A DNA stretch of 64,000 nt, from the NCBI GenBank assembly GCA_907165135.1, contig OU015566.1, forward strand, positions 9,114,001-9,178,000. The letters run 5' to 3'. The position numbers and the translations under genes were made by a program. This stretch comes from Oikopleura dioica. Its lineage: Eukaryota > Animalia > Chordata. Below are positions 1 to 13,668 of this stretch, one piece after another. Position 1 is the first letter of the stretch; every line of letters starts with the position of its first letter. Under the pieces are notes generated by a model. The model was not told where the DNA came from. It saw only the letters and a program-made list of their open reading frames with translations, and did no database searches.

Positions 1-596
1 GGTCGACTCTTTTAGGTCTTGGTTTTGGAATTTTTCAATAAAATGAAATCACAAAATTAAGTTTTTATTTTTTGAAAGCCAAAATAAGCAAAGATTTCAA
101 CGTTCAAATAAGTGTGAATGAATCTGTAGAAGACTCGATTGAAGTGATTCAAGAAGAACCAGAGCCTGATGAGAGCGAAATCACTATGGAACGAACTGCT
201 ACAAAAGTCAAGTTCTCTGAAGTCATTCATGAAATTCCACAACCCGAGAGCCGCGAAGAATCACCTGTTGTTCCGCTTTCAAGGAAAGAATTGATGCGAC
301 AAAGGAGAAGAAACGACAGTATAAAGAAAATATGATAAATGTATATTTCTGTACTTTATAAATTATCAATTTTAATAAAGCAAATGAGTAATGAATGACA
401 ACTCTTTCAGACTTAGGATAGACGACAGCAGGGGGCTCAAGGTGATTATTGTTTCCATTTTGAAAACGGAAATTGTCCCAAAATCCGCGGGATTTGTATT
501 TCAACGCTGGAAAACGAGGATGCACAATTGCGTTGCGTAGATGGCGTAAATTGGCACGTAAATTGTGACAAGCGAATCTGAATAAATAAGATAATC

Positions 597-712
597 GAGT
601 AGGGCCCATTAGGTGTAAATACCCATTAGGTGTAAATTCCATTAGGTGTAATTTTCTAGAAGGTGTAACACACCTAATGGATATTTACACCTAATGGGAA
701 CTTACACCTATT
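597..712 (+). repeat. Left TIR of the MULE, itself palindromic (TAGGTGTAA units direct then inverted)
   Basis: Matches the reverse complement of 7581-7697 with few mismatches. Confidence 0.92.
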
Positions 713-829
713 GGGTGAAAATTCTTTGTTTTGGGACATTTGGTGTAAATTGTTGCCGAATTCATTTCTTTCGATCGAAAAAACTCTGCGAAATCCGACT
801 GCTGACGAGAAAATACAAAGAAAAACAAG

Positions 830-1600
830 AAAAAAAACCTTGATCTGCCTGAATATAAATAATACGAATAAAAGAGATTCTCAATAAAACCGGTCAAGAA
901 GGAAGCTCTTTGATAATATCGTCCTTGAAGCCTCTTTATTTTTATAAAATGAAACGACTTCTGCAGGAACCAAAGCATCGGACTTGAATTTACTTGCTCC
1001 ATCAAAATCTTTTTCATCGAACTTTTTCTTTGGAAGCGAGCTCTGCGTTTGATTCGTTTATACAAGCCGATCATAATGCCTTTACACAGTTTTTGAATAC
1101 TTCCCTCTAAATAATTGACAACAGAAGGAAATTCGTCACGAAGTAGGACAGTACCTGATTTGTACTTTTCGATGAAGAGACAAATCTCATGAATGAATCC
1201 TAACGAGCCAATAGTTGCAATCGACTTTTCCGAGTTAAGCTGCGACAGGATAATCATCGACTCGTTAACGACATCTTTACATTTTGACGTGCGCACAATA
1301 CTGTACAAAGGTCGTAGTAGTTCTGAAGTGACGCAGCCAAATTGGAGCAATTTCAGGCACTAAATCACGATCGCGTCGTTTTCTTTGTGACTAAGCATGG
1401 TGAGCAGAAGTGGTCGGGAGTTCTGTGTCAGTTTCTCGCTCTTTGTGAAAAAGAAATCGCTGTAGCTGCTGAGGAGGACTTGTAGTATTTCTCAAGATAT
1501 GCCATCGAATCTTTGAGGTTGAGGTCTGCTTTCGGAGCTGGTACTTTCGTATTCATTGAGATCTTCATCCATTTGCAGCTGCGTTGTCGTTTTGCTTAAA
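830..1600 (-). pseudogene. Unidentified passenger ORF in the MULE (helical, possibly ARM/HEAT-like), two in-frame stops
   Basis: ORF 691-1350 extends upstream in frame through a TAG near 1360 and a TGA near 1493 (...GIS*EILQVLL...AIVI*CLKLLQFG...). Confidence 0.45.
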
Positions 1601-1738
1601 ACACTGTTATACAATTATATTGACTATATGAATTTGAATTCTAGTGCTTCTAGAACTTAAGTCTACAGATATTTTCATAAAAATTGAACATTTACTTCTC
1701 GATTTTCTGCAGGAGTCTACTTATTATTAGAGATAAAA

Positions 1739-4700
1739 ATGAAGCGTAAAAAGGATGATGAAAAGAATGAGGATTTGGAATTAACAAAAGAAGTCAGCGA
1801 CATGGTTAAGAAAGCGCCAAAAGCTAAACTTGAGCTCAAAGACTTGCTTACGCCTGAACGTCCCCCAACGATGATTGAAACTCAAGAAATCATCGATGAT
1901 TCTACCAGTACCGATCCAAAGGAAAAGTGCTCTTTATTAATAATTGAATTACCTTGCAATTTGTCGTAAGGATAAACTTCCAAGTAGCCTCGGTCAGAAA
2001 TGAGCAACCCTTTCGCGGAGAACTCTTCATCATCAAATTGAAATCTTGAGAGCACTAAATAGTTGATATCAGTTCAATTGGCAACAAGCATGGTCAATTT
2101 CATTTTCTTTATTTGCTTTGGACCTAATGAATTGTTCTCATATACTCCGCGCAATAAAGACGATTTTCAAGATCTTCCAAAAGAACTAGCAGCAAAATAT
2201 CCAGGAGCAGGTCAAATAGAATGATTTACCCTTTAATATATACGGCATGCATCTTTAGGGCATTAACTTACCTAAAACGCTTCTCAATCGAGTAAATCAT
2301 GTTGTGGACATCGCTTTGGCACTGTTGCTTGCCAAAATGCTGGAATTGTGACGGTTTTTTCGTGCGCTGAAATCAAAAATTATCATTTTGAGATCTGTTA
2401 AAAAGGATGGAAAAGAATGAATCTCAACTGTCAAAACCACCACGTTCGAAAGAATCTGGAAACATCTAACTGTAAAGCGAAAATATCGGTGCTTGTACGA
2501 AATTCTGATTACAAATCGAAAGAATTTTACGATGTTGAAAACTTTATAATCTACGATCCAAGAAAATCTCATGTGGCGTTTGAAGTTTGTGGCTTTGGTG
2601 GTCATTTGAATGCACTGATTGATTGTTGGAAAAGATATGTGGTTTACAGATTCCGTCGAAACGAGCTTGAATCACAGCCCCGGACTTCGAGAAAAATGCT
2701 TGAATTGTTGCAAGATGAAGTCGTTGACAGTGAAATTTCAAATCGAATTTTCGGTGGAAATGCCAAAAAGAATGCCAAAAAAGCGGCGCTTCGATTTAAA
2801 AACTCAAATGTCGCTGCCAAGGAAAAACAAATTGTGCCGACAAAATGCCACTTCTTATATATGTTTCAACGATGGTGGGCGGATTCACGACTCCCTTCCC
2901 TTAGCAACGATTTCACGCGCCACAATATAGTGTTTTTTTTTGGACCATGACGCTCGCCGAAGTGAATATGCATCAAGTCTCAATATAGGAAGAGTTTTTT
3001 ACCTTTATTGAGTACAGTTGAGTTGTTGTTATTGTAGATGAGACAGGTTGTTTGTGAGTTCGCTCGTGATCTGAAAAAAAATATGAAACTCGAAAAGATG
3101 GAATAATGAGTGTCGTGAGTGCCGTCAAAAAACAGTGGCCACAACTTGTGATGGTAACCGAACCTTGCCGCGATCAATCGAACAAATTCAAGGTCGGGTT
3201 TTTTTTATTTAAGTCGCTTGGTGTCGCTTATTCGGGCTTTTGTTTTCGGGGTAATCATCAAAAATCGACGGTGCGTTAAAAAAACCTGTCAAGGGTTATT
3301 GCGTTGACCGAATGACTTGTCTCCTCAAAGATCACAAAGCGGAAACATATGAAGCGTTATGGGCATTCTTCAAAAGCCAAACGAATGGGCTCCCTAATCT
3401 TCGCTATGTGTGCAGTGACTGGGAGAAATCCTTTATCTCTGCTCACAAAACTGTCCTGCCCGGCGTTATTCATATAAAGTGTTCCTTCCACTTGTATCAA
3501 TCCTGGAAACGCCGGGCAGGACAGGAAGGCCTCTTGAAGGCTTGGGAGGAAGAACGGACACAAGTCATCAGGAAGGTTTTATAAAATGAGATTGCTAACA
3601 TTTGCTATTTTACCTTTGATCTTTTAGCATCAGCTGATTTGTAGATAAGTTTCCGCTCTCCGACTCGCTTGAGGTTTCGGTTGCCATTCGGGCAAATCTT
3701 CTGCGGAAGATGAATTTTTTCTGACTGAGCTTCAAAATGAAGAATACACAGGCGCTTTTGGTCTTCATTGGAGGTGTGTATTGATAACTGTGCGCTTAGA
3801 ATGGGTATTATTTGAAATCAATTAAAAATCGTCCACAAAATCAAATTCTGACGTATTTTCGTACCTTGGCAAATAGTATCGATGAACTTGATTTTTTTTG
3901 TTGCTAGTTTGCGCTCTTGGTTGACTTAATAAAGGACTTGTAGTTTTGCTCAGCTTTTTCTTTTCTCCGGCTTTGAGGACTTCCTCGATGTTCAGATTGA
4001 CATCGAGAGCTCCTGTGCATTCGCCAGCGAAGATCTTTCTCGCTCCGTGACGGATCATGTTCAACATTTCCTTTTGATTGAGCTTCTTGTTCTGATCTAT
4101 TGATCATCGTTGAGGGTTTCTAAAAGGGGGATTAGTATTGTGAAAGTCAGTTAATTTCATTTTATAAAATCAATAAGGAATTGTCTGTATTCTGCGCCTT
4201 ATTTCCCTGTTGGACAAGATGAATTTCGGGCTGTTTTCATCGAAATCATCACAGAAGAGTGCCAAAAAAATCTTGAAATCGACGGTAATGCTGTTGAGTC
4301 GATGGATGTTGATGACGAAAACGCGAAAAAAGAGGTGGATGTTGATGATGACGAAAACGCGAAAGAAAAGGTGGATGTTGATGACGGCGAAAAGAAGAAA
4401 AAGAAGAATGGATGGATCGCTTATCGCGACTACCTCCTCAAGAACTATTTCAACGAAGACGCCACATTCAAGCCTAGTGAATGGGCCGATAAATCATCCA
4501 ATATGATCAAAACTGGGGAAATCGATAGCACTAATAACGCCAGGCTTGGTTTGATCATTTTTACCTAAATTTTTCTCCATGATTTCGACCACGGTCTCTC
4601 TATTTTTATTCGAATTGAGCAGCGCTTCTCATCAGCTTCATGACCAGCGACAACAACAGCTTGACTCGTTTCTAAAATATCAATTAACTTTTGAAATCAA

Positions 4701-4850
4701 CGATGAACCAAGATTTAGCGAGAGTGTAAATGCACGACTCTTGCGCGGTCTGCAGTCTAAGCCTGATGTTCAAGAGCTTTGCAAAGTGATCACAAATCGC
4801 AAGAAAACGACGTTTAACGATGAGTTGAGCTATCTTGAAGATGGAAAATG
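1739..4850 (+). CDS. Spliced MULE-family DDE transposase, probably with frameshifts; exon limits approximate
   Basis: CDGNRTLP (~3147, first Asp), SDWEKSFISAHKTVLPGVIHIKCSFHLYQSW (ORF 3312-3584, second Asp and CxxH), NYF...W...TNNA|SESVN (third acidic residue after intron 4544-4718). Confidence 0.85.
3957..4097 (-). pseudogene. Fragment resembling the ISWI/SNF2L post-helicase region, inside a transposase intron
   Basis: DQNKKLNQKEMLNMIRHGARKIFAG...NIEEVLKAGEKK resembles recalled ISWI [25 protein letters not shown]...DIDGILERGAKK. Confidence 0.7.
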
Positions 4851-6166
4851 GCCAATAAAAACAACGCAAAAACTGGTACAACATGGATGGTTAAATTTAA
4901 CGCTATGCAACGATTCTATCGAAAGTTGGATCGACAGTCTTCTTCCATGCCTCTAAAAATAAGCCATGCTGAGCTGAAAAAGCTTGTAATATCGACTTCA
5001 AAAGATCTAAAAGGGGCGTCGACCGAGGCAAAAAGATTACTCTCTTCAAAAGACGCACTTGACAAGTTCCTTTGTGACCTGGATCGCAGAAATCCAGTGT
5101 TTGAGACTTTTCTCGCTGGAATGAATTTCAATTTGGTCGAAAAGAAAGAAGAAAACGCAAAAAAGAAAAAGGGCTCACCTGGTCATGAAATCAACGAAGA
5201 GAACCTTCCAGCAATGGGCGAGCATAGCGGCGCCTTTGTGAGGAAAACAGATGAAATCAAGGAAGAAAAGCGTCGTATTGATGTCCTTGAAGAAGCCGCG
5301 GAATACACAGAAGTTAAGACAGCAACAAACAACGATGAATCGTCCAATTCCATTCTTCTTGAGGAATCTGAAAATGCAATGAAATACGAAAACGAGCTTG
5401 ATAGAAAAATGTTCAAAACTCCAACTTTCAAGTTTGAAAAGTTTAATGGCTACAAGATGTCATTTGAAGCAGAAAATATCGCTAAAAATATACAAAAATG
5501 GCCTGAAGGACAGCTGGTCAATTTAATAGAAAAGGAGGAAGTTCGCGTCCGAGATCTGTTGCCACTTTACAAACTTCGAACAGAAACAAAAGACAAAATT
5601 CTGGACTTGTTTATCATCATTATGAGACATTACCAACAGCAACACCAAACTAATGATATTATTCTTGAAGACACGAAATTCTCACAAATGGTCTTTCAAG
5701 GAAAAAATTTTGCTGGTACTGGTTATCATCCATCAGAAATAAAACGATTTGTTTGCCCTGTCTTTATCCCTGGTCGAGTTGGACACTGGATAATTGTCAA
5801 GGCGGATAGAGAGGAAAAAAATATTTACAATTTACGACTCTTTGAATTTCGAAGATTATGGAGATGTCTATCAAGGCAAATTTCAAAAAATATTAGATTA
5901 ATTAACCGTATCATAAGCGCAATTGGAAATTTAATTAAGTGTTTCTTGAAGTATTCGAAGAAGACGAAAAGGACTGGGCTCCTATATATCAAAAATGCCC
6001 AAAACAAAAATACATGGACTGCGGCATTAATGTGGCGTATGGATTATTTTTCATCGTGTGCCTAAATCTGGAGAACTATTCAACAAAACTCAAGGAGAGC
6101 TCCAAAAATTTACGACTAAATTTGGCAGCGTGCATATCCACTGGCGAATTAATGATTGGTACCTGA
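4848..6166 (+). CDS. Transposase C-terminal region plus Ulp1/SENP-like (C48) cysteine protease domain
   Basis: GHWIIV (His), TIYDSL in an alternative frame near 5830 (Asp), PKQKYMDCGINV (Gln, Cys; ORF 5939-6166). One frameshift near 5820-5830. Confidence 0.82.
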
Positions 6167-6167
6167 T

Positions 6168-6845
6168 GTTTGGCGAACCAGCTGTAAGATTTTACTTTCC
6201 AGTACTTCTTTTTCTTAAATAAACATAATCAGAAACAGAGATTTATTCAGTTATTTACTTTCGAGTACAAAAGCGTATCGCTGAGCCCCTCAACCGCAAC
6301 TGCGAGGCGTTGATTATGCCAGGACATTTGGAGGACGTCGCCTTCGAAGCCTTCGATTTCGCGAGCTTCTTCGTCCGGGCCCATGATTCCTTCGAAAGAC
6401 GCGATGAAGATCTAAAATGAGGGTGAGAAATCGTAAACATGGACGGAGCACTTGCCTTGTTTTTGATGGCGAAAATGATCTTTTGATCGTCATGTGACCA
6501 ACAGACGTTCAAAGCAGGGCCTTCCAAATTGCACCAGGTTCCTTCATTTGTCCAGGTTACGCAGCTGAAAGAACAGTTTATTGGTCATAAATTGAGCGCA
6601 GTTTTACCTAAAAATGGCGATAGAATCGCTTTCAGAAACGACCAGTTTCTCTCCCGAGTTACTAAATCCGACGAAGGCAACACAACTTGTCCAACTTGTC
6701 GCTGAACGAGTTCTTCTCGATCCGAGTCCCAGATTTAGACAAAAGTCGCGTTCTTCGAACTCAGCGCCAGAAGCGAGCTGAACGGGTCCCAAGAAAGCGA
6801 GTGGATCGGCTTCAAAACTTTGCCAAAAAAGGTCGACATTTTCCG
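6168..6845 (-). pseudogene. Captured intron-containing Aladin (AAAS)-like WD40 fragment
   Basis: Spliced translation KPIHSLSWDPFSSLLALSS..FV*IWDS, FSNSGEKLVV..IFR|CVTWTNEGTWCNLEGPALNVCWSHDDQKIIFAI, EGDVLQMSWHNQRLAV is collinear with recalled AAAS repeats. Stop at 6735-6737, a frameshift at a duplicated ACAAGTTG, and three short introns. Confidence 0.72.
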
Positions 6846-7580
6846 CGAAGGAAAGTTCTTCGTGACAGACGTTCGTGCTCTCGAGGAATTGGTCATCAGC
6901 GCCGCCTGGATTTCGCGTTCGACGCTAGAATTTTACAATTTATTTTCAAAAATCCCTTCTAAAAGATTACCTCAAGTTCATGAGTCAGCGGTCGAGGGAG
7001 ATTCTCAACGATTTGATGAACTGGTCTTCCTTTTTCTGCGAATATTAACTTTCCTCTTGATTCGGAGTAGCATCTCTCTTCTGCTCCTGGACTCATCATT
7101 TTTCAGCCGGGCTGTTTTCATTAAGCTTCAATTCTTCTTCTCTTTTGTGAATATACATTTGATCATCTATCTGTAATCAAAAAAGGTACCATTAAAGGTC
7201 CTACGGGTTAGTTTTAAATATAAAAATTTATCAGAAAAAATTGCAGGAAATAGATTAAACTTCAGCTAAATAAACGTCGGCAAGAAAACATATTTCGCAG
7301 AAAGATTTCTCGTTTGAAAAAAGAAAGAAAAATGATAATTCATTGAGCGCAAATGACGAAACGCTTCAGCTTGTCACGATTACTCATCGATAGCGCGCGA
7401 TTTTCAAATTTTGACTTCGAAAATTGCTCGAAAAGATGTTTTTTGTTTCTTGAGTGCAATTTAGAAAGAATTAAAAAAAAATATTTTTCCAAAAAAAAAT
7501 GCTCGTTGGGGGGTCGTCGAGAATGTGTGACAGCTTGTGTCGATCCCTTTTTTACAAAATAATTTTGAAAAATATTGAAC

Positions 7581-7697
7581 AATTAGGTGTAAATACCCAT
7601 TAGGTGTAAATATCTATTAGGTGTGTTACACCTTCTAGAAAATTACACTAAATGGGTATTTACACCTAATGGGATTTACACCTAATGGGCCTCACCC
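7581..7697 (-). repeat. Right TIR of the MULE
   Basis: Reverse complement of 597-712. Confidence 0.92.
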
Positions 7698-9616
7698 AAG
7701 ATAATCGACACGTTTTTCATCACCATGATTCACCAAAAGAATTTCTAGCGAAAGGGACATCTTTCCCGGAAGCTGTTCTTGATTTAAGAAGCTCATTCTT
7801 ACTCATGGTCAAACAATTTTTGTATAACAAAGTATCAATGGGATCAAGGACGATTATTAATCGTCGATTAACAAACGGCCTTGATGTTTTTTCATCTAGA
7901 ATTTTCCCAAACGATCTTGACTCAAGATTATTGAGAATGAAACTGAACCATGTTATTGACTTCCTTGAAATAAGTGATGAGTAGTAAATGTCAAAATTTC
8001 CGTCTCTAATTATTTCCTCAAGCTGAAGTTCAACCGGATTGAGCGACTCAAGTTGAGCAATAAAAATGTTCCGACTTTAACTTGTTAAATATTTGAAATC
8101 GAATCTGAGGGATACAGTATCCCGGATTCTTTACGAGCCATATGACAAGTGGAGTTCGTAAAATATCTACGGGCACATTGGAAGTGTTCCGAAGTATCGC
8201 GTGCGAATGTTGGTCTACCGGAGGAAAAATGAATATATTTAGCGTGCACTGTTTTTTCTTGCTCAAGTGATTGCTCGAGCCATCTTAGAAGCTCTCACAA
8301 GTTCAAAGAGCTCTTACAGTAGAAAGAAATAAGTGGTTTCATCATTGAGATCACACGATTGATGAGAATTTCAAAAAGCCCTCCGTAGTGGTCTCCGGAG
8401 GGGGGAGATTTTCCGGTTTTATTTTTGTCTTTGGACAATACTGTGACATTTATACAGTGTTTTCTTATTTCAAAGGTAGAAAAAAATCATTATTTTGATT
8501 TAACTTTTGATGAGATAACAGACTTCCTCGACGTCTGTTTGTGAAAAAAACTCCTTTATTCCAAAATGAGAGGGATTTAAACTGACTGTTTTGTCCAAGT
8601 TACATGAGTCTGCTTCGAGGAAGAAGGTGTTAGTAATGACAAAAACGTAATGATGGGAAATTAAAGATTTGCGTGTGAATATTTGCGTAGAGGGAGTCCT
8701 CGGGACGTTGCTTATTGTAAACGTATATTTCTGACGGCGAGATCACGCATTCCTAGCCACTCACTAAATCCCCACCAATTTCCTCACAAGAGCGCACTTC
8801 TACCGACAATTATCCCAAAAGAAGAAAGAAATCATCGAGGAGTCCCCCGAGCGCAGCAGAGAGCGCCGCCAGAACAAGTGTTTAAAAGAGAGCACGAATT
8901 TTTGAAATCATCATAAATCGAAACAAGGAGAAAAAAAAACGAAGTTGAACAACAAGAAGTCCTTAGAAAATCATTTCAGCATCGTTCATCAATAATAAAA
9001 ACGAGGTAGGCTGGAACAACAACAAATGCCGAATTCACAGACTTGTTTTATGGAAACGCGTTTCGAGTTCAAACAAATATACTGAAAATCGTCTGAAAGA
9101 GAACCTTACTAGATGAAAGAGAAAGAGACACCAAATCATCCACTTTTTCATTGTCGGAAAGTAGAGGAAGCTCTTCTTATAAAAAAAGTTTATTGGCTCG
9201 TTTTCAAAAAATATAGCAGTGAATATGAACTCGGCAAATATTCTAATTTACCCGAGATCGGACGGTCCTTTTCACGTTCATAAAATCTGTCAAATTATTT
9301 GCCCAGGCCATTCCATGAAAAGGCACTAAATTAATCTAGGTCTATTTTCAGATCTACTCCTGTGCGTCGCCAAAACGAAAGAACCTCCCACTTCGTAAAA
9401 TACGCAGAAGAAAAATTTACAAAACGAACACTTCCGAATCGGAGACCAAAATGCAGATTATGCTGATTCTACTGTCGTCACAACTGTATCTCATCGGATC
9501 AGTCGCAGGAAGCCCGTGCAGTAAGAAGAACTGTCACAACGTAAGTGAGAATATTTTTAAGCGGGAGATACAGATTGAGATAAAGCTGACAGTAATATGT
9601 ACTCAATGATATTTTC

Positions 9617-11623: not shown

Positions 11624-13668
11624 TTATTTAATGAACAAAAATTGCTTACGACTGTTCCTGCTAGAATCCGGCCTAAGCGTTCCATTATGTAGTCTAGTTA
11701 GTGAATTTGTGGGCTGTTGAACTGGTGCTAAATTCAGTGTCGACGAGGTTCTCGATCCCATGCTGGTCGAGTGTGGTCTTCTTAGTTGTTCGTCATGCAC
11801 CTGTGTTTTAGTTTCTGTAATCACCCTTGTTTGATTCTACAAAATAAATAAGTCAACTTTCTAAGAGACAAATTTCACAATGTTGATTTGCTGCTGCAGC
11901 TTCAAGAGTTCAATCTCTTTTTCTAAACGAAAGGTTTCCTTCAATTGTTCTGCTTGTAATCTGGATTGTATCTCAAGCCTCATTACTTGCGTTGACAAGT
12001 TTGAATTGTTTTTAACCACATTAGATACTTCTTTTCTAGCATTTTCAATCGAGTGGTCTCCGTTTGCCCAAGTCGCCGTTTGCCCAAGTCGCCGTCTGCC
12101 CAAGTCGCCGTTTGCCCAACTTGGGCAGACGGAGATCTTAGGCAAACGGCGATGTAAATTTTTTTTTAATTGATTGATCATAAAATGATAGAAGTAAGGC
12201 GACAATTTCATTATCATCACTTAGTCTTCTGGTTGCGCTCTGATTTGCAGAAACTTTCTGGTGAAAACAAAGGTTGTCCTGTGATGTATTTTGAACGGTT
12301 ATTAACCGTGGATCCTTGACAAGACCACCACAATTTTCTCATATTGTTTTTCAATAGTTGTATCCGATTTTCGAATAAATTCTTGAGCATAAACACATAA
12401 ATAAGAGACGAAATGAAAAAACAGTATCGTGGACTCTACGGAAGCTTTCCGAATTATGACATAGTTTACATTGATAACGAAGAGCCTTCGTCATGGATGG
12501 TTTAATTATGAAAGTCGCTAAATTCTCAATAAAAGTCCTAATAAACTATTCCCGGAAGAGTTAATCATTCATTATACTTGAAGTATATTCGGTCGGTCAT
12601 TAGGTCGGTCATTAGGTACCGGTGAAAGCAAGCCTTTACCCGGTATACTCGGTCCATAAATAGAGTTTCCTCACACTGCAGCCGCGGAGCGGACATTAGT
12701 TTTTTGATGAGCCAGAAAATATGCTTGACTTTGGGACCGGGTACCAATTTGTTTCCGGCACCGTCCGTCTCCCGGAGGTTTTGGAAGAGTTTCATCAGTT
12801 TTTCCCTTTTTCTCACTTCTCACAATGACTGTTTTCCCTCAGTTTCAATCAGAAACAATTCCAAAAATAGAACGGACCGAAAATGAATCACAAGAAACAG
12901 CAATATGGGAAACCATCAATTCAACCAAGTTGGGGATTAGCGCTTGTGAGGACTCGGCGCATCCATCGTTTCCTCAATGTGTAGGCCTCGGACGTAAAAC
13001 TAGCGATTTAACTTTACCACTTAAAATCTATCCTATCCTGCTAATTTTGATTTCATAATTAATTTCTTTAAATTGAATTATGATTATATTTTCAATTTGA
13101 TCGCCGTCTGCCCAAGATCGCCGTTTGCCCAAGTCTCCGTCTGCCCAAGTTGGGCAAACGGCGATCTTGGGCAGACGGCGACTTGGGCAAACGGCGACTT
13201 GGGCAAACGGAGACCACTCTTTTCAATCATCTCTCTTAGAGTGTATTGATCCTTTTTCAGTTTCTCCTGTTCCCGTTTGAGTTCGTCTTGATCCAATTTT
13301 AGTTTTTCTTGATCTTGTTGCAATTTTTTTCTTTCCGATCGCATTCTTTCGTGCGCGAGTTTTAGTCTTGATTTGATTTTTTTCTGTTCTATTTTAATTG
13401 TTTCTGCTTCGGTATTTTGACGGAAGTCTTCTACATCTTGTTTGTATTCAGTATATTGAGATTCCACGAGTTTTACTCGTTTATTAATCTCATTAATTTC
13501 ATCTTAATAACTTTACGAATCAAAATAAGAAAAAAAATATTTACCAGCATTTAATTTGATTAGTTCTCCTTGGGACTGTTCATTTTCAATCCGTATCCTT
13601 GCATTTTCGTTTATTTGATTTTGAAAAAAGTCAAGCCGATTTTTCAGAGAACCTGAAATTTCTCCTTG
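11624..13668 (-). CDS. Spliced coiled-coil protein gene with exon 2 interrupted by a MULE MITE
   Basis: Removing 12051-13219 plus one TSD joins ...TLREM-IEN-ARKEVSN... in frame; GT-AG introns join the flanking exons (13513-13710 and 11624-11824 ORFs). Confidence 0.7.
12051..13219. mobile_element. Non-autonomous MULE (1169 bp) with repeat-built palindromic TIRs
   Basis: Termini GAGTGGTCTC/GAGACCACTC; ~100-120 bp TIRs of GCCGT(T/C)TGCCCAAG units; 9-bp TSD TTTTCAATC at 12042-12050 and 13220-13228. Confidence 0.92.

Follow-up and report, generated by a model that had tools for sequence, protein, structure and literature searches.

A 64,000-nucleotide stretch of Oikopleura dioica DNA (assembly GCA_907165135.1, contig OU015566.1, forward-strand positions 9,114,001 to 9,178,000; hereafter the window, whose numbering is used unless another locus is named) contains at positions 597-7697 a Mutator-like element (MULE) of 7,101 bp. 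It is very probably a recently mobile cut-and-paste MULE that carries a transposase-Ulp1/C48-like gene together with decayed antisense fragments of at least four host genes. An earlier sequence-only reading of the window had proposed a mobile, Pack-MULE-like transposon with terminal inverted repeats (TIRs) and a 9-bp target-site duplication (TSD) at this place, and both the ends and the mobility are borne out by a precise empty site in another individual.

Element ends and empty site

The element opens with GAGTAGGGCCCATTAGG and closes with the complement of GGGTGAGGCCCATTAGG, and its TIRs, long as is characteristic of MULEs, can be aligned over about 118 bp with about 92% identity between the two ends. 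The 15-nt motif CCATTAGGTGTAAAT occurs ten times in the 64-kb window against an expectation of 0.11; all ten copies lie no more than 150 bp from the two termini, so that the motif arrays are confined to the ends. Each end folds on itself, and this hairpin shape explains the spurious microRNA-family matches obtained from Rfam at 615-705 and 7576-7670, all of them below threshold (21-32 bits against cut-offs of at least 46); Rfam and tRNA scans found nothing real. No further copies of the element were found within the window.

The element was followed in the contigs of three DNA runs, X2 (another individual under the same species label), X5 and X6 (organism B), and in the reads of the RNA run X11, mapped on window positions 1901-7900. 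In the X2 contig of the right flank, the match ends just before 7698 and the sequence extends leftward as GTAAATTGTGACAAGCGAATCTGAATAAAT, a 30-mer that occurs only once in the window, at 558-587, directly before the left TSD copy. X2 carries an exact empty site with one AAGATAATC, and this empty allele lacks precisely 597-7697 plus one TSD copy. The TSD, 9 bp long and within the 8-11 bp expected of MULEs, is accordingly present there as a single copy, and recent insertion of the element would have generated its duplication in the window. No X2 contig over the filled junction was seen. X2 contigs over the element interior (for example 4074-6207, 2,126 nt) differ from the window by length differences only, with no substitutions. 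Since these interior contigs coexist with the empty site, the element sits elsewhere in the X2 animal, which indicates that the insertion in the window is recent and polymorphic. The empty-site allele that the sequence-only reading had named as a check was found in this form, and the case that it had named as contrary, another haplotype keeping the host-like segments without the TIRs, did not materialize, the whole unit including the host fragments being missing from the X2 allele.

X5 contains only an internally deleted form of the element, in which 2373 is joined to 5304 with 2,930 nt skipped and an 11-nt filler, ACAACAGAATT, at the joint. A deletion with filler at its joint is what interrupted gap repair usually leaves behind. 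The derivative retains the topoisomerase III (TOP3) and Aladin pieces described below and has the form of a true non-autonomous Pack-MULE, the skipped 2374-5303 leaving it without transposase.

Transposase gene

Two relatives of the element are present in the public assembly GCA_907165135.1, one on contig OU015566.1 (L001) and one on OU015570.1 (L002). Like the window element they have a transposase-linker-Ulp1 architecture, with 27-58% amino-acid identity, and the combination of transposase and Ulp1-like domain that had been read from the window sequence is therefore common to two paralogues. The element would accordingly be read as containing one plus-strand multi-exon gene (Table 1), encoding a DDE transposase continuous with a cysteine-protease domain of Ulp1/C48 type.

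When four interruptions were removed by eye with L001 as guide, an open product of 473 aa was obtained that contains the three catalytic residues D, D and E. The motifs of this spliced model are FFFDGIMS, VCSDWE...CSFH and TNNASESVNA, with the first D encoded by a split codon (2942 + 3098-3099). The DDE motifs of the sequence-only reading thus hold in the spliced model and align to L001, and the C..H expected of a MULE follows the second D. The exon at 3294-3569 taken singly matches the Pfam MULE profile PF10551 over positions 34-98 of 99 (E 1.3e-5, 26.0 bits against a cut-off of 27.6). A tblastn comparison of the 473-aa product with L001 gave three aligned stretches, aa 172-248 (E 3e-9), aa 259-413 (E 2.6e-16) and aa 410-473 (E 3e-13), each of which spans one or two of the interruptions in the window and is uninterrupted in L001. 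The transposase frame of L001 is interrupted at a different position (about 810 nt, 8410-9221). On this comparison the four interruptions appear to be introns or insertions, with their splicing being a prediction. Non-GT, non-canonical introns make up 11-12% of the introns of O. dioica (PMC8008620), which makes the GA-AG and GC-AG borders in the model plausible.

Downstream of the catalytic E, the frame kept in L001 and L002 (...TWMVKFNAMQRFYRKLDRQSSS...) can be reached in the window only through a one-base shift in the A5 run 4868-4872. A GT-AG intron at 4878-4927, our first guess, was rejected because it would delete residues conserved in both relatives; a shift of frame within the A5 run is the better fit.

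A separate observation concerns the 53 nt at 3214-3266, which are a short dispersed repeat. Its depth is about 6-15 times that of neighbouring sequence in three genomes (X2, X5 and X6, including organism B), it occurs in many contigs with differing flanks on both sides, and it matches no Rfam family or tRNA.

Protease-like domain

The residues H, D, Q and C of a C48 peptidase occur in the expected order and spacing in the motifs VGHWII (H), IYDSLN (D) and PKQKYMDCG (Q..C). The order proposed from the sequence therefore stands; the D, Q and C, however, are out of frame with the H. Among the protein-language-model neighbours of 5469-5831, 88 of the 100 named ones are Peptidase_C48 (top score 0.91). 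In L002 the H and D lie within one open frame (L002:10436-10870), and all 11 PDB matches of this piece are SENP1/2 (best E 0.017), beginning at the start of the catalytic domain. The L002 piece and the window piece align well. L002 also hits the Peptidase_C48 profile at E 0.0069, with 16.7 bits against a cut-off of 20.7. An AlphaFold model of the L002 piece (predicted local distance difference test 55) gave meaningless Foldseek matches. On sequence comparison, the downstream domain is probably a member of C48.

In the window copy the protease-like domain is broken. The A7 run at 5815-5821 has the same length in X2 and is one letter shorter in the X5 copy, where H and D consequently fall in one frame. 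With at least two frame breaks, both in A-runs, the window copy would probably be crippled in its protease part and may depend on another copy for movement. An exhaustive search with 4929-5831 returned only three relatives, all of Oikopleura type, and a word-indexed search with the open reading frame (ORF) 4848-6065 gave no match.

Captured host-gene fragments

The element holds pieces of at least four host genes, namely a kinase/ARM-repeat gene, topoisomerase III, probably ISWI, and Aladin, all antisense to the transposase and decayed. Together with two short host-like pieces (2278-2316 and 3214-3266) these exceed the three antisense passengers counted in the sequence-only reading. Host fragments lie between the TIRs and their parents elsewhere, as in a Pack-MULE; because a transposase gene is present, the element is Pack-MULE-like without being a strict Pack-MULE. 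In annotation, the Aladin, ISWI, TOP3 and kinase-like pieces should be treated as pseudogene fragments and not as genes.

The parent gene of cargo 1 encodes a protein kinase domain at the N-terminus together with an ARM-like helical part. The cargo matches O. dioica proteins with E values from 6e-41 to 2.5e-14, including an NCBI entry named Oikopleura dioica, and is 91.5% identical at the DNA level to the TARA Oceans contig L008, in which it is flanked by sequence of no relation to the element. The parent gene, with a protein-kinase exon (Pkinase, E 2.7e-42) directly upstream, turns up again in four contigs from marine metagenomes and in one Bergen scaffold. The decay of cargo 1 is evident from two in-frame stops, frame shifts and two internal deletions. 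For cargo 2, the PDB match to TOP3A falls on residues 462-488, and host contigs of X2, X5 and X6 diverge from the element exactly at 1959 and 2025.

The parent of cargo 3 is likely ISWI, as judged from sequence matches. Its two best PDB matches are both ISWI and fall at equivalent places following the ATPase, the first at SMARCA5 residues 638-687 (E 0.018) and the second at E 0.16. Contigs of X5 and X6 show about 93% identity to 3599-3818 and 97% to 3956-4098, their depth being continuous, and the host contig continues past 4098, where similarity to the element ends. X5, although without 2374-5303 of the element, covers 3599-4098 at its single-copy depth. The ISWI cargo named from the sequence alone is hence likely, with a length of about 500 nt in place of 141 nt.

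Cargo 4 was identified as Aladin with an orthologue, L010, found by a degenerate-pattern scan of metagenome contigs. The L010 ORF of 487 aa matches Pfam Beta-prop_Aladin (E 5.2e-53, 180.8 bits against a cut-off of 171.1), and tblastn of this ORF on the window gives E values of 1e-25 to 1e-38 only at cargo 4, first with residues 1-85 and then with residues 237-391. X6 host contigs match cargo 4 at 91-95%. The Aladin identity proposed earlier is thereby confirmed, while its description as the 3' end of the gene is not, the piece joining residues ~1-85 to ~237-391. A stop codon with AATAAA had been taken for that 3' end; the orthologue ORF continues there, and the cargo probably runs into an intron. 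Cargo 4 contains frame shifts and stops and keeps two short introns of 43-44 nt. In L010 (93-1553) the same region belongs to a single 487-aa open frame, so that the presence of introns varies between lineages. Individual exons were less informative: in PDB, 6607-6924 gave only a chance globin and 6250-6411 no match; 6471-6584 alone gave Aladin at E 2 in PDB and Beta-prop_Aladin at E 0.097 in Pfam; 6738-6932 gave generic WD40 proteins, and generic propellers in an Atlas search; and a word-indexed search with 6258-6584 found no match.

Organism B has contigs on the host-like parts and none on the transposon-specific stretches. Contigs prove presence and not absence, and this makes the evidence for a host origin strong and not absolute. 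The parents are single-copy conserved genes. Where all three of X2, X5 and X6 show the parental sequence, they are in agreement, and the cargo departs from them by about 3% in the ISWI exon and by up to about 13% nearby. As the cargo is 3-13% removed from the host genes while the element copies of the window and X2 show no substitutions, capture predates the latest transposition.

Capture most likely would have proceeded by template switching during repair of the excision gap. The pieces may have been accommodated without interrupting coding sequence, in the 5' subterminal region, in a transposase intron and in the 3' subterminal region, and would travel with the element as decayed non-coding passengers. 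A tentative further idea, which we think may well be wrong, is that host DNA, once captured, turned into spliceosomal introns within the gene of the transposon itself. Most of the 606-nt GA-AG interruption, which the paralogue lacks, is the likely ISWI fragment (500 nt); if spliced, the interruption would represent a very recent intron gain from captured filler. The unusually permissive splicing of O. dioica would make this possible, and a MULE that encodes a transposase could then accommodate cargo within its coding region.

Sister elements

L001:5092-14135 is a sister MULE of 9,044 bp with the 9-bp TSD CAGCATTTC. Like the window element it has hairpin-like ends built of short motifs and carries antisense host fragments. 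Its terminus GAGTACGGC shares GAGTA.GGC with GAGTAGGGC of the window, while its end motif, CATGTAAAA, is unlike CCATTAGGTGTAAAT. L001 is collinear with the window element from the transposase core to the protease motifs, and a single open frame (L001:9863-10555) runs from the E motif into the linker. Antisense to its transposase are a SMARCC-type piece at 5884-6270 (SWIRM-assoc_1, E 4.7e-10) and a Sec61-alpha piece at 12294-12884 (SecY, E 2.5e-15). A link of internal pieces to the AMP-binding gene beside L001 was sought and none found. No inverted ends of L002 were found in its 20-kb locus, and L002 may therefore be a fragment.

The recognized cargo had earlier been noted to relate to the nuclear pore or chromatin, with the caveat that this may be coincidence. 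Since the cargo also includes kinase/ARM and topoisomerase III pieces, and that of the sister Sec61-alpha, the theme is probably a coincidence, as that caveat allowed.

Points against and alternative explanations

Several results weigh against the reading of a mobile MULE with a transposase-protease gene and host cargo. The Pfam score of the MULE domain is slightly below the gathering cut-off. In the protease part, H does not share its frame with D, Q and C, three frames are needed to read the domain, and the junction at about 5900-5938 has no acceptable splice sites. The Ulp1 pieces of the window matched nothing in Pfam or PDB, SENP included, and a family profile of five rows did not recover SENP either. 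Homopolymer-length errors in the assembly are possible, X2 and the window differing by indels only. No genuine reads of X11 (1.78 Gb read) fall on the element within 1901-7900, and no RNA run is listed as containing 4155-6166. The four introns accordingly stay predictions. The animals that yielded the RNA may lack the element, so that this negative need not mean silence. About 130 X11 reads do map at less than 90% identity to an acidic VDVDD repeat at 4372-4408; they run on into unrelated sequence and come from another transcript with a similar repeat, not from expression of the element.

An unlikely alternative to passive cargo is a functional one, in which read-through or intronic transcripts of the element with antisense ISWI, TOP3 and Aladin would pair with host mRNAs. 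Either small RNAs would arise and dampen chromatin or nuclear-pore functions of the host, or the element itself would become a target of silencing. All six named pieces (four from the window, two from L001) run antisense to the transposase (1 in 64 at random, 1 in 32 for any uniform orientation), and several parents are chromatin or nuclear proteins. However, no transcripts were detected, the pieces are rearranged and have diverged by 3-13% from their parents, the kinase/ARM and Sec61-alpha pieces have no nuclear role, and selection against splice and poly(A) signals in the sense direction would account for the bias more simply. The decayed passengers proposed above are thus preferred.

It is very improbable that the host-like segments are nested repeat insertions or later local rearrangements in one copy, neither captured by the MULE nor travelling with it. 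The dispersed repeat at 3214-3266 does fit such an origin; yet X2 has an identical element elsewhere, whose contigs (4074-6207 among them) span boundaries between cargo and transposon, an X5 contig (1984-2307) spans the TOP3 boundary, the X5 derivative retains the Aladin piece, and the genes from which the cargo derives are conserved and single-copy. An assembly artefact, or two MULE ends mobilizing ordinary host DNA with resident genes between them, is scarcely credible even though the assembly is probably long-read based and X2 differs from the window by indels only, because what the empty allele lacks is precisely 597-7697 and a single TSD copy, the interior is found again in independent short-read contigs from X2, and the cargo is fragmentary and stop-ridden with intact parents elsewhere. 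Capture of host pieces by a MULE that then moved with them remains the reading followed below.

Table 1. Positions of the element's features in the window
Feature	Position	Strand	Support or remark
Left TSD copy, 9 bp, AAGATAATC	588..596	.	X2 empty-site contig joins 558-587 directly to 7698
Left TIR, first letters GAGTAGGGC; 5-6 copies of CCATTAGGTGTAAAT in both orientations; self-hairpin	597..714	+	
Cargo 1: host kinase/ARM-repeat gene fragment, exons and intron remnants	945..1553	-	O. dioica protein matches
76-aa Lys/Glu-rich ORF, possibly a 5' exon of the element gene	1739..1969	+	homologue search without match
Cargo 2: 67-nt topoisomerase III piece	1959..2025	-	PDB TOP3A E 0.036; Pfam Topoisom_bac E 0.031
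Short host-like piece	2278..2316	.	loose contig ends in X5 at 2278 and 2316
Transposase exon 1, N-terminal region; last base is first base of D1 codon	2417..2942	+	
Predicted GA-AG intron, 155 nt	2943..3097	+	spliced product collinear with uninterrupted L001 ORF
Transposase exon 2, FFF-D-GIMS (D1)	3098..3192	+	
Predicted GT-AG intron, 101 nt, holding the 53-nt dispersed repeat 3214-3266	3193..3293	+	
Transposase exon 3: MULE domain, D2 3417-3419, CSFH 3480-3491	3294..3571	+	Pfam MULE E 1.3e-5
Predicted GA-AG intron, 606 nt, housing cargo 3	3572..4177	+	L001 uninterrupted here (block aa 259-413)
Cargo 3: ~500-nt fragment, likely host ISWI (SMARCA5-type), inside transposase intron	3599..4098	-	
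Transposase exon 4	4178..4543	+	
Predicted GC-AG intron, 175 nt	4544..4718	+	L001 uninterrupted (block aa 410-473)
Transposase exon 5: TNNASESVNA, catalytic E 4720-4722; ends at frame break in A5 run 4868-4872	4719..4872	+	
Linker and N-terminal half of Ulp1/C48-like domain, H 5784-5786; ends at A7 run 5815-5821 with frame break	4872..5821	+	
Ulp1-like segment IYDSLN, D 5836-5838; frame differs from that of H	5822..5901	+	aligns with L002 ILDSLN
Ulp1-like C-terminal segment, Q 6005-6007, C 6020-6022, stop codon	5939..6166	+	
Cargo 4: Aladin (AAAS nucleoporin) fragment, residues ~1-85 joined to ~237-391	~6178..7111	-	
3' subterminal region, transposon-specific	7112..7579	.	covered in X2 and X5; no X6 contig
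Right TIR	7580..7697	-	
Right TSD copy, AAGATAATC	7698..7706	.	

Comparison with known systems

The window element and its relatives make up a chordate MULE family with recent movement, a transposase fused to a SUMO-protease-like domain, and repeated uptake of host fragments, some of them in what would be its own introns. It offers a tractable case for the mechanism of capture, with a precise empty site, parents that are available and a deletion derivative whose joint contains filler DNA. It may also connect the cargo of transposons with the gain of introns in a genome with 11-12% non-canonical introns (PMC8008620). A eukaryote-wide study found almost no MULEs in chordates (Dupeyron et al. 2019, PMC6446971), and a survey by Tan et al. 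(2021, PMC8277862) of 100 animal reference genomes yielded no Pack-MULE. No description of Mutator elements in Oikopleura came up in a literature search.

That Mutator elements capture genes is textbook knowledge for plants. Pack-MULEs of rice and other plants contain host fragments, often from several unlinked genes, between TIRs with a 9-bp TSD (Jiang et al. 2004, as cited in PMC6446971 and PMC8277862). The window element resembles them in that the parents lie elsewhere and the fragments have undergone rearrangement and move together with the transposon. Unlike Pack-MULEs, which have no transposase, it encodes one, part of its cargo lies in a transposase intron, and its host is a chordate.

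In plant MULEs that bear Ulp1, the protease is a separate captured gene. The Oikopleura domain, in contrast, continues the transposase frame in the window element and its sisters and is very divergent. What the window element has in common with KI-MULE/Kaonashi is an Ulp1/C48 protease-like domain borne by a MULE (Hoen et al. 2006, as cited in PMC8277862).

Among animals, Ssk-FB4 of Drosophila (PMC8277862) is likewise a TIR element with 9-10-bp TSDs that has been argued to be a MULE, is polymorphic and has captured host sequence. It is non-autonomous, with TIRs of about 700 bp and a single coding cargo, whereas in the window element a transposase gene is accompanied by multiple decayed fragments in antisense orientation. 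Muta1 of Aedes aegypti resembles the window element as an animal MULE with TIRs, a DDE transposase and recent activity, and differs in that the abstracts on it report neither a protease domain nor host cargo (PMC5225508, PMC5499845). Set beside these systems, the Oikopleura element extends gene capture by MULEs, well known in plants and hardly documented in animals, to animals.

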